IMG/VR virus record: IMGVR_UViG_3300024502_000010
Span: 140,830 to 204,829 of that record
Direction: 5' to 3' (one strand)
Length of the DNA: 64,000 bases
Under the pieces are notes generated by a model. It was given only the letters and a program-made list of their open reading frames with translations, had not been told where the DNA came from and searched no databases. Shown piece after piece: positions 3,217-4,470 of the stretch. The position numbers and the translations under genes were made by a program. The stretch's first letter is position 1. Every line of letters begins with the position of its first letter.

Positions 3217-4470
3217 TCAAGTTCCCTCACACCAAGAGTTAATATATTTCTCTTGTTCCTCAGTGAGTTTATCAATCGAAATTCCCATTGCAGAAAGTTT
3301 AAGTTCTGCAATTTCCGCATCCTTTTCTGCAGGAACGGGATAAACACCAGGAGCAAGTTTACCTTGATTCTGAACAAGATATTCTACAGCAAGTGCCTGA
3401 TTTGCAAAACTCATATCCATCACAGCAGAAGGGTGTCCTTCAGCAGCGCCAAGATTTACGAGGCGACCATCTGCAATTACCACAACTTCATTATGTTGAA
3501 GTTTGTACTGCTTAACAAAAGGACGAACCTCTTTAATTTCTGTTGCTTTTTCTTCCAGAGATTTCACATCAATCTCATTATCAAAGTGACCAGAGTTGCA
3601 AACAATAGCACCACTACGCATCCACTTCATATGGTCATAAGCAATAACATTTTTATTGCCAGTCACAGTAATGAAAATATCACCAAGAATCGCTGCCTGA
3701 ACCATAGGCATCACTCTATAACCTTCCAGAGTTGCTTCAATTGCTTTTACTGGATCAATCTCAGTAACAATCACATTTGCACCCATACCCTTAGCACGGA
3801 GAGCAACACCCTTACCACACCAACCAAATCCAGCAACAACTACAGTCTTACCAGCAAGAAGAATGTTGGTAGCACGAATAATACCATCCAGAGTTGATTG
3901 ACCAGTACCATAACGATTATCAAAGAAGTGCTTAGTCTGAGAATCGTTTACATTGATTGCAGGATGCTTGAGCACTCCATCATTAATCATTGCTTGGAGA
4001 CGAACAATACCAGTAGTAGTTTCTTCTGTAGTTCCAATCAAATCAGCAATCTGTTCTGGGCGTTCCTTAATTAAAGTTGCTACAACATCAGATCCATCGT
4101 CAATAATAATATTAGGACGATGATCGAGAGCGGTATTAATATGTCTAATATAAGTGTCACTATCTTCTCCTTTGATTGCAAATACGGGGATGTCCCAATA
4201 CTTTACAAGAGCAGCAGCAACATCATCCTGAGTAGAAAGTGGATTACTTGCAATCAGCATAGAATCTGCACCAGCATTTTTAAGTGCAATACAAAGGTGT
4301 GCAGTTTCTGTTGTAACGTGATTGCAAGAGACTAAACGTACTCCCTCAAGTGGTTTTTCTTTTGCAAATCTTTCTTGAATTTGTTTAAGAACAGGCATCT
4401 CTCTTCCTGCCCATTCAATTCGTTGTTTGCCAAGTTCGGCAAGGTTAATATCTTTAATATCGTATTTCAT
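3217..4470 (-). CDS. ahcY: Adenosylhomocysteinase (SAH hydrolase)
   Basis: [60 protein letters not shown]. Confidence 0.97.

Follow-up and report, generated by a model that had tools for sequence, protein, structure and literature searches.

A predicted short-form S-adenosyl-L-homocysteine hydrolase carried by a lineage of T4-like cyanomyoviruses

Background

S-adenosyl-L-homocysteine (SAH) is the product inhibitor of all methyltransferases that depend on S-adenosyl-L-methionine (SAM), and the enzyme that hydrolyses it is adenosylhomocysteinase, or SAH hydrolase (AhcY, also SAHH). We report the analysis of an ahcY gene that lies at positions 3217 to 4470 of a 64,000-nucleotide stretch of viral DNA, referred to throughout as the window, which makes up the last 64 kb (positions 140,830 to 204,829) of the IMG/VR virus record IMGVR_UViG_3300024502_000010 (G000), a linear record of 204,829 bp that is rated 78% complete. 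Every gene around AhcY is on the minus strand, and the order along that strand is a wcaG RNA motif, a glycan biosynthesis cluster, a porin gene, AhcY, a gene for a PstS-type phosphate-binding protein, hli, ferredoxin, a small conserved open reading frame (ORF) and peroxiredoxin.

That ahcY occurs in catalogues of viral auxiliary metabolic genes (AMGs) is already known. Kieft et al. (2021, bioRxiv 10.1101/2021.01.05.425418) count ahcY (K01251) as one of the viral auxiliary gene families of methionine and organosulfur metabolism and give individual IMG/VR hits for it, from both freshwater and marine sources. Such entries stand at the level of a catalogue and are read there as sulfur metabolism. 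Our search of the literature found no description of a cyanomyovirus AhcY lineage, its origin, its mobility or the selection acting on it; an estuary virome study that refers to earlier work on SAH hydrolase deals with a gene labelled ahbD and not with ahcY. The gene described here joins the host-derived auxiliary genes of cyanophages, the best-studied case of viral rewiring of host metabolism, of which the methyl cycle has not hitherto been a part. What is new is a viral clade of single origin under purifying selection, an apparently non-host short form of the enzyme, mobility as an ORF-sized unit and abundance in river samples.

Results and discussion

The ahcY gene encodes a predicted full-length SAH hydrolase

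The ORF runs from ATG to stop over 417 codons and occupies its interval on the minus strand exactly, the plus-strand frame being full of stops. Its product matches the ahcY equivalog model TIGR00936 with 638.8 bits against a cut-off of 497.6, over model positions 1–416 of 416, and is likewise matched by NF004005. Pfam finds AdoHcyase (PF05221) and AdoHcyase_NAD (PF00670), the latter at residues 185–344, giving the two-domain architecture in which a Rossmann-fold NAD-binding domain is inserted in the substrate-binding domain, and the GxGxxG motif of that fold, GFGWCGKG at residue 214, is shared throughout the viral clade described below. The nearest solved structure, PDB 7O5L (425 aa), aligns end to end, interrupted by just one gap of one residue (E 1e-204), and the blocks HVTTETA, DDGSD, TEETTTG and TKHFFDN, together with other catalytic and NAD-binding blocks, are identical in the two proteins. 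The catalytic set comprises the His of HxTxE, the Asp of DDG, the Glu-Thr-Thr-Thr stretch, the Lys and Asp-Asn of TKxxxDN and the two gate or catalytic His residues of GHFD and GHP, whose roles we take to be those of the corresponding residues in the human enzyme. Among 25 distinct viral sequences, eight catalytic and cofactor blocks are invariant or nearly so.

A motif of the form HxTxE marks the SAH type of the enzyme, as against HxExK in the S-inosyl-homocysteine type (PMC13406329). The phage protein carries the former, as H51-V-T-T-E55, and its score is higher with the cyanobacterial SAH enzyme (683 bits) than with the S-inosyl-homocysteine hydrolase 7R3A (465 bits); the motif and the ranking of the PDB matches together rule out an S-inosyl-homocysteine hydrolase. 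The ORF is thus predicted to encode a full-length and intact SAH hydrolase. A preliminary description of the window had recognised a full 417-aa AhcY with catalytic and NAD-binding motifs, and TIGR00936, Pfam and the 7O5L alignment bear this out.

The gene is carried by a T4-like cyanomyovirus

The window encodes a T4-type DNA polymerase, gp41 helicase, primase, NrdA/B, UvsX, MazG and CobS. Its replication module has 75–78% nucleotide identity to those of the Synechococcus Kyanoviridae S-SRM01, S-SCSM1, S-SM2 and DSL-LC03, and the 386 records that match this module are all either phages of Synechococcus or Prochlorococcus or viral contigs of marine origin. The genes flanking AhcY, phage genes on both sides, are 75–82% identical at the nucleotide level to those of Synechococcus Kyanoviridae, and the peroxiredoxin-hli-ferredoxin stretch is 82% identical to that of the Dishui Lake phages DSL-LC02 and DSL-LC03. 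The AhcY region recurs without change on four other IMG/VR contigs from different samples, among them a record of 284,050 bp (G302, locus L004) rated 100% complete. The contig is a genuine, Kyanoviridae-like T4-like cyanomyovirus, with a genome of about 284 kb when complete.

A cellular gene on a linear, incompletely rated record might in principle be a mis-assembled host fragment, or a recent capture with no function in the phage, and the cellular origin of AhcY would agree with either. A chimera is excluded because the junctions are the same on the four other contigs, which come from different samples; the gene is flanked by phage genes on either side, and its composition is phage-like. Recent capture as a passenger accords poorly with the data presented below, in which the gene has the third-position base composition of the phage and belongs to a 33-member clade with a long stem and a dN/dS of about 0.1. 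An artefact or passenger is, to our minds, a negligible prospect.

Origin of the viral AhcY

Phylogenies were built in two steps, from 153 sequences and then, with care, from 38. In both trees the 33 related viral sequences, the window's included, form one clade (SH-aLRT 100; 100/100), whose stem is long, at about 0.3 substitutions per site, and which is nested, with support of 99, within the short-form AhcY of photosynthetic cyanobacteria. The highest identity to a cellular protein among 301 cyanobacterial species genomes is 77%. The sister of the viral clade is a pair of genomes, G055 and G073, placed there with weak support (84); these genomes are 2.4 Mb in size with 66% GC, and their AhcY lies in an ordinary cellular neighbourhood. 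On the evidence of the trees, the viral AhcY is of single origin, having been captured once from a short-form cyanobacterium. The phylogeny against host AhcY that the preliminary description called for places the phage protein with the short form and apart from the long form of marine picocyanobacteria.

Short-form SAHH, of the Synechocystis, archaeal and Thermotoga type, is the form without an insertion in its substrate-binding domain and without the Lys/Tyr tail that clamps NAD across subunits (PMC13406329). The phage protein lacks both. It aligns end to end with 7O5L, without the insertion of about 40 residues, and its alignments to the long form span 446–459 columns for 414 query residues; it ends in ...INSWCEGT, compared with ...INSWASGT in 7O5L, while long forms end in ...VEGPYKPDHYRY and carry the ...K.DHYRY tail. 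The enzyme of Synechocystis sp. PCC 6803 (7O5L/7O5M) is described, in the passage of PMC10978960 that cites Malecki 2022, as short, C-terminally truncated and alkali-metal-independent. The phage protein shares with it the one-gap alignment, the identical blocks and the lack of insertion and tail, and differs in being 8 residues shorter (the first 7 N-terminal residues and the one internal gap), in being phage-encoded with a GC content at third codon positions (GC3) of 0.23, and in being known here from sequence alone.

The known host group of the Kyanoviridae has a different enzyme. In Synechococcus ROS8604, Synechococcus MIT S9452 and Prochlorococcus marinus AhcY is a long form of 472–478 aa, only about 40% identical to the phage protein; it belongs to the same enzyme family and passes TIGR00936, but it has the insertion and the tail and falls outside the short-form group on the tree. 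The phage AhcY would therefore not be a copy of the host enzyme, if the host is of the long-form type. Other host-derived genes of the window give a mixed host signal, the porin being nearest to Synechococcus ROS8604 (G189), PstS to G003 and a gnd-like gene to G055. The last of these (26275–27342, minus strand), a short 6-phosphogluconate dehydrogenase of 355 aa, shares 55% identity with a gene of 349 aa in G055 and only about 31% with the long Gnd found in marine Synechococcus. As G055 is also a genome with the AhcY nearest the phage clade, the match may hint at a shared gene pool or at a host lineage.

Maintenance in phages

Over 297 usable pairs of the viral clade, pairwise dN/dS has a median of 0.106 (range 0.03–0.20), and dS runs from 0.5 to saturation. 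The gene has a GC3 of 0.232, compared with 0.256 ± 0.076 for the phage ORFs and a mean of 0.577 for the cellular homologues; overall GC is 0.39 for AhcY and 0.34 for the glycan cluster, in a phage genome of 37% GC. Low dN/dS, near-invariant blocks and phage-like GC3 indicate that AhcY has long resided in phages, where strong purifying selection has kept it functional. Reproducible presence inside a bona fide phage, cyanobacterial origin by phylogeny and purifying selection are the marks of an auxiliary gene.

The setting is that of the classical cyanomyovirus auxiliary genes (pstS, hli, petF-type ferredoxin, peroxiredoxin, gnd and cobS), which likewise lie in hyperplastic regions, are of cyanobacterial origin and shuffle like cassettes; the neighbours of AhcY are exactly such genes. 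AhcY is unlike them in occurring in no deposited cyanophage genome searched and in no PHROG family, and in coming from a short-form cyanobacterium and not from the Synechococcus/Prochlorococcus type.

Distribution

A tblastn search found AhcY in three of 50,697 deposited phage records, none of the three a cyanophage, and PHROGs v4 holds no family that matches it. The preliminary description's remark that AhcY is not a standard cyanophage auxiliary gene stands at this scale. IMG/VR yields 39 AhcY loci, 34 of which are 75–100% identical to the window protein. The exact protein is present on 51 contigs, and the exact gene occurs in at least 16 metatranscriptome runs from rivers, as well as in about 20 other riverine runs.

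Unrelated AhcY proteins, 40–60% identical to the window's, occur on other contigs classed as viral (L035, L037–L040, MT836783.1, CAKLQF020000002.1 and CAKLQH020000036.1), whose carriers include a 347-kb IMG/VR contig, a 305-kb 'Acinetobacter phage' record (MD-2021a) and a gut 'Bacteriophage sp.' contig. They resemble the window's gene in being full-length and borne on such contigs. The tree places L035 and L037–L040 among non-cyanobacterial lineages, as separate events, and these genes would be either independent acquisitions or cellular contamination.

Organisation of the locus

The features of the window are collected in Table 1.

Table 1. Positions of features in the window and the evidence for each
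Feature	Position	Strand	Basis
AhcY coding sequence, 417 aa, compact short form	3217–4470	−	ORF, TIGR00936, PF05221 + PF00670, 7O5L alignment
Shine-Dalgarno sequence GGAG, 4 nt upstream of AhcY ATG	4475–4478	−	Read from sequence
Terminator-like GC-rich hairpin with T-run, between porin stop and AhcY start	4487–4506	−	Scan; stem of 7 pairs, 6 being G-C
SLH + OprB outer-membrane porin gene, upstream neighbour of AhcY	4529–6025	−	Pfam SLH, OprB
Sigma-70-like promoter, 11/12 consensus positions, ahead of porin	6093–6121	−	Consensus scan, pattern match
PstS-type phosphate-binding protein gene, downstream of AhcY	2184–3146	−	PF12849; phrog_5385 phosphate transporter subunit
Terminator-like hairpin (2133–2153) overlapping 12/12 sigma-70-like promoter (2116–2144)	2116–2153	−	Consensus scan
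Glycan biosynthesis cluster, about 18 kb	6118–23834	−	Pfam scans
Glycan-cluster SAM methyltransferases	8081–8854, 16987–17583, 19348–20019, 21857–22600	−	Pfam
wcaG RNA motif, 5' end of glycan operon	23765–23862	−	Rfam RF01761, 102.9 bits against gathering score 42
Ten tRNA genes	28125–30603 (nine in tight array), 46058–46129 (one)	−	Rfam scan
Dam-family (MethyltransfD12) DNA adenine methyltransferase, potential SAH producer	56253–57116	−	PF02086, 99.4 bits

AhcY looks like a member of an AhcY-PstS unit, transcribed by read-through or from an unrecognised promoter, and not of the glycan operon, because a porin cassette with promoter-like and terminator-like signals of its own intervenes. PstS is probably co-transcribed with AhcY. 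By pattern match, the end of the unit would be marked by the hairpin and promoter between PstS and hli, in which the -35 box (TTGACA) lies inside the hairpin and is followed by TATAAT. Rfam, at gathering thresholds, found no SAM or SAH riboswitch near AhcY, the window giving just the wcaG RNA and the tRNAs.

The window porin shares 76% identity with a protein annotated as a porin in Synechococcus phage S-SRM01, the only deposited phage with a full-length homologue (S-CREM1 and S-PM2 share just the SLH part); no PHROG family matches it, and its identity to the porins of Synechococcus ROS8604 reaches 55%. The glycan cluster encodes GT25, UDP-glucose dehydrogenase, two GT11 enzymes, GT2, GT61, GT17, three epimerase/dehydratases, an NAD-synthase-like protein and the four SAM methyltransferases.

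Zero-mismatch contigs span the entire AhcY gene in four RNA libraries. The depth of the PstS-AhcY contig relative to that of the glycan-cluster contig was 1.44, 0.86, 0.66 and 1.46 in the four runs, a variation that fits transcription better than uniform DNA, for contigs that are unstranded and may include DNA carry-over. Between window positions 1001 and 7000 the RNA-library contigs (runs X1, X5, X10 and X13) break repeatedly, at 1821–1845, about 2123–2166, 4976–5005 and 5165–5297, and a porin segment at about 4980–5300 stands at 2–5 times the depth of its flanks, probably reflecting strains or relatives that share the segment.

AhcY moves between genomic contexts as a bare ORF

AhcY is found in at least four genomic contexts. 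The window's own, context A, has the order GT25-porin-AhcY-(PstS); context B, seen in 12 of 33 loci, places the gene in the replication module, as UvsX-gp41 helicase-AhcY-MazG; the two others are rarer. Nucleotide homology across contexts ends at the boundaries of the AhcY ORF, with no shared flanks. The tree needs at least six changes of context, where the minimum possible is three, and the context-B sequences L022/23 are nested inside context A with support of 100/98. The approximately unbiased (AU) test rejects a single context-B clade (p 0.0013), for groups that were defined after the first tree was seen. The two lineages that branch deepest in the viral clade both have context B, which makes the replication module the probable ancestral site of the gene.

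PstS is variably present downstream of AhcY in related loci and the S-SRM01 porin sits in an unrelated neighbourhood, from which it appears that the host-derived genes AhcY, PstS and porin shuffle individually. That same placement makes S-SRM01 uninformative as an 'empty-site' comparison. In T4-type phages, a promoter-early stem-loop (PeSL) cassette consists of a gene flanked by shared promoter/stem-loop repeats that serve as substrates for recombination. The hairpin/promoter at the end of the AhcY-PstS unit bears what we take to be a resemblance to such elements; a PeSL-type mobile cassette was rejected, as the contexts share no flanking repeats.

Methyltransferase content does not track AhcY

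The methyltransferases encoded by the phage are four of glycan type, two of the Dam family, one of which lies in the window, and one N6/N4 DNA enzyme; neither a C5 methyltransferase nor MetK was found in the phage record. The PF02086 match of the window Dam lies at G000:197178–197906, corresponding to window positions 56349–57077. This gene has no PF02086 match in G302, which shows only the other Dam copy, and the difference may be strain-level variation in gene content or a missed match. The preliminary description had counted four or five glycan methyltransferases plus Dam in the window, in agreement with the four glycan-cluster ORFs and the Dam gene found here, and had proposed that AhcY serves this methyltransferase-rich island.

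Glycan-type methyltransferases (the sum of Methyltransf_24, _21 and _25) were compared in nine genomes. Among those with AhcY, this phage (G000 and G302) has four, while the contigs G303 and G304, 81–82% complete, have one or two each; among those without AhcY, DSL-LC02, S-SRM01, RN05-S and S-B05 have two each and DSL-LC03 has none. The counts do not separate the two groups, and the co-occurrence check proposed in the preliminary description thus gives 1–2 in the other AhcY carriers as against 0–2 in AhcY-negative relatives. Dam or N6_N4 enzymes are present in four of four AhcY-positive and none of five AhcY-negative genomes. This association was rejected as a sampling effect: homologues of the window Dam, 60–71% identical, occur in 435 phage records, of which about 415 are from cyanophages, and the three AhcY-bearing deposited records are not among the 435.

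These results bear on the idea that the adjacent glycan-methylation island, together with Dam, has AhcY as its dedicated accessory, selected because this phage carries out unusually many methyl transfers. In the window and in about half of the related loci AhcY does lie less than 2 kb from a glycan cluster, in the order GT25-porin-AhcY, and the four glycan-type and three DNA methyltransferases of this phage are the highest count among the nine genomes. But between AhcY and the operon stands the porin cassette, which has promoter-like and terminator-like elements of its own; context B is found in the two deepest lineages and in 12 of 33 loci; the AhcY ORF alone is common to the different contexts; the content of the glycan cluster beside AhcY varies widely among loci; and the other AhcY-positive contigs have glycan-type counts like those of AhcY-negative relatives. 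We regard a dedicated role of this kind as unlikely. Of the earlier interpretation, the intact AhcY on a real cyanophage and a general role in the methyl cycle are retained, and the specific coupling to the island is given up.

A proposed role in SAH clearance

The reading that we favour, and hold to be reasonably probable, is that the gene encodes an active, NAD-dependent short-form SAH hydrolase which clears SAH generally and so sustains methylation during infection. The ancestor of a freshwater and riverine T4-like cyanomyovirus lineage would have taken AhcY once from a short-form cyanobacterium, and its descendants would have kept it under purifying selection, its codon usage converging on that of the phage, while it moved between positions as an ORF-sized unit. 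During infection the enzyme would hydrolyse SAH to adenosine and homocysteine, removal of SAH would relieve product inhibition of SAM-dependent methyltransferases generally, those of the phage as well as those of the host, and homocysteine would be returned to the regeneration of methionine and SAM. The phage AhcY probably backs up or bypasses the host's own enzyme and would sustain methylation while the cell's own gene expression is shut down. The proposal presupposes catalytic activity, expression during infection and a physiological benefit, and it envisages a broad set of methylation reactions that might gain.

The scale of SAH production may be estimated from Dam. GATC is under-represented in the 204,829-bp record, with 418 sites against 683 (mononucleotide) to 819 (Markov) expected, despite two Dam-family genes. 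If one Dam targets GATC, these 418 sites, scaled to 284 kb and counted on both strands, would require about 1,200 methyl transfers per genome; a burst of 20–100 virions would then release about 2×10^4 to 10^5 SAH molecules, which in a cell of about 1 fL would, under these assumptions, amount to tens to more than 100 µM SAH if unremoved. Such concentrations exceed typical inhibition constants of methyltransferases. Host ahcY is, moreover, listed as up-regulated in infected Synechococcus WH7803 (Puxty et al., PMC5931967), and this is consistent with a demand for SAH hydrolase activity.

Several points weigh against SAH clearance as the role of the gene. Across the nine genomes, the presence of AhcY does not follow the methyltransferase load, and hundreds of cyanophages with Dam and glycan clusters are without AhcY, so that the gene is dispensable for such phages generally. 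The RNA libraries may contain phage DNA, and their contigs carry no strand information. Finally, the equilibrium of AhcY favours SAH synthesis, and the direction taken in vivo depends on removal of the products.

The last point leads to the opposite proposal, namely that AhcY runs synthetically, or shifts the SAM/SAH ratio, and in this way inhibits host methyltransferases or a restriction-modification or BREX system. Besides the equilibrium, host nucleic-acid breakdown could raise adenosine, and manipulation of SAM is known in other phages, such as T3 with its SAM-degrading enzyme. A role against host defences, or in the reverse direction, is nevertheless highly unlikely because higher SAH would inhibit the phage's own seven or more methyltransferases; in addition, the catalytic blocks have not diverged from those of housekeeping enzymes, and the scanned neighbourhood gave no pointer to anti-defence genes. 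An effect of AhcY on restriction or BREX is mechanistically doubtful, since removing SAH does not deplete SAM.

Nutrient salvage could instead be the main benefit, with homocysteine used for methionine and adenosine for the purine pool, both feeding an AT-rich genome of 284 kb and its proteins. The company of AhcY would suit such a role, as it stands among nutrient-acquisition and redox genes (PstS, porin, ferredoxin and peroxiredoxin) and, in context B, beside the nucleotide metabolism of MazG and the replication module, in a genome of low GC. The flux through SAH would, however, be small against nucleotide demand, MetK is absent from the phage record, no adenosine kinase, adenosine deaminase or methionine synthase came to light, though no search aimed at them was made, and salvage is in any case a by-product of SAH clearance, with which it overlaps. 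As the main benefit we think it improbable; as a side benefit, homocysteine and adenosine salvage is compatible with SAH clearance.

A further suggestion, which we put forward tentatively, is that by keeping a structurally different SAH hydrolase, and not a copy of the long form of a picocyanobacterial host, the phage holds its own control of methylation potential, independent of host regulation. If so, SAH clearance would be a real bottleneck of infection in these waters, and selection on the timing of expression would lie behind the repeated moves of the bare ORF from the replication module to the auxiliary island and back. Should the host prove to be a picocyanobacterium with the long form, the phage would offer a clear example of a virus that brings in an isoform foreign to its host. 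We consider the significance of the finding moderate, since the enzyme is an ordinary one, if in an unusual carrier, and the coupling to the methyltransferase island does not hold. An abundant phage lineage in dozens of river samples does offer a testable handle on whether the SAM/SAH ratio limits phage production, and the case is a caution for AMG catalogues that file ahcY under 'sulfur metabolism'.

Other features of the window

The NAD-synthase-family (PP-loop) protein within the glycan cluster (9743–10501, minus strand) is more likely to be a sugar amidotransferase than an enzyme of NAD biosynthesis. At the 5' end of the same operon the wcaG RNA overlaps the TTG that was assigned by program as the start of the first epimerase ORF (22584–23834), and the true start of that gene therefore probably lies further downstream. 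An HNH endonuclease ORF (28973–29509) adjoins the array of nine tRNA genes.

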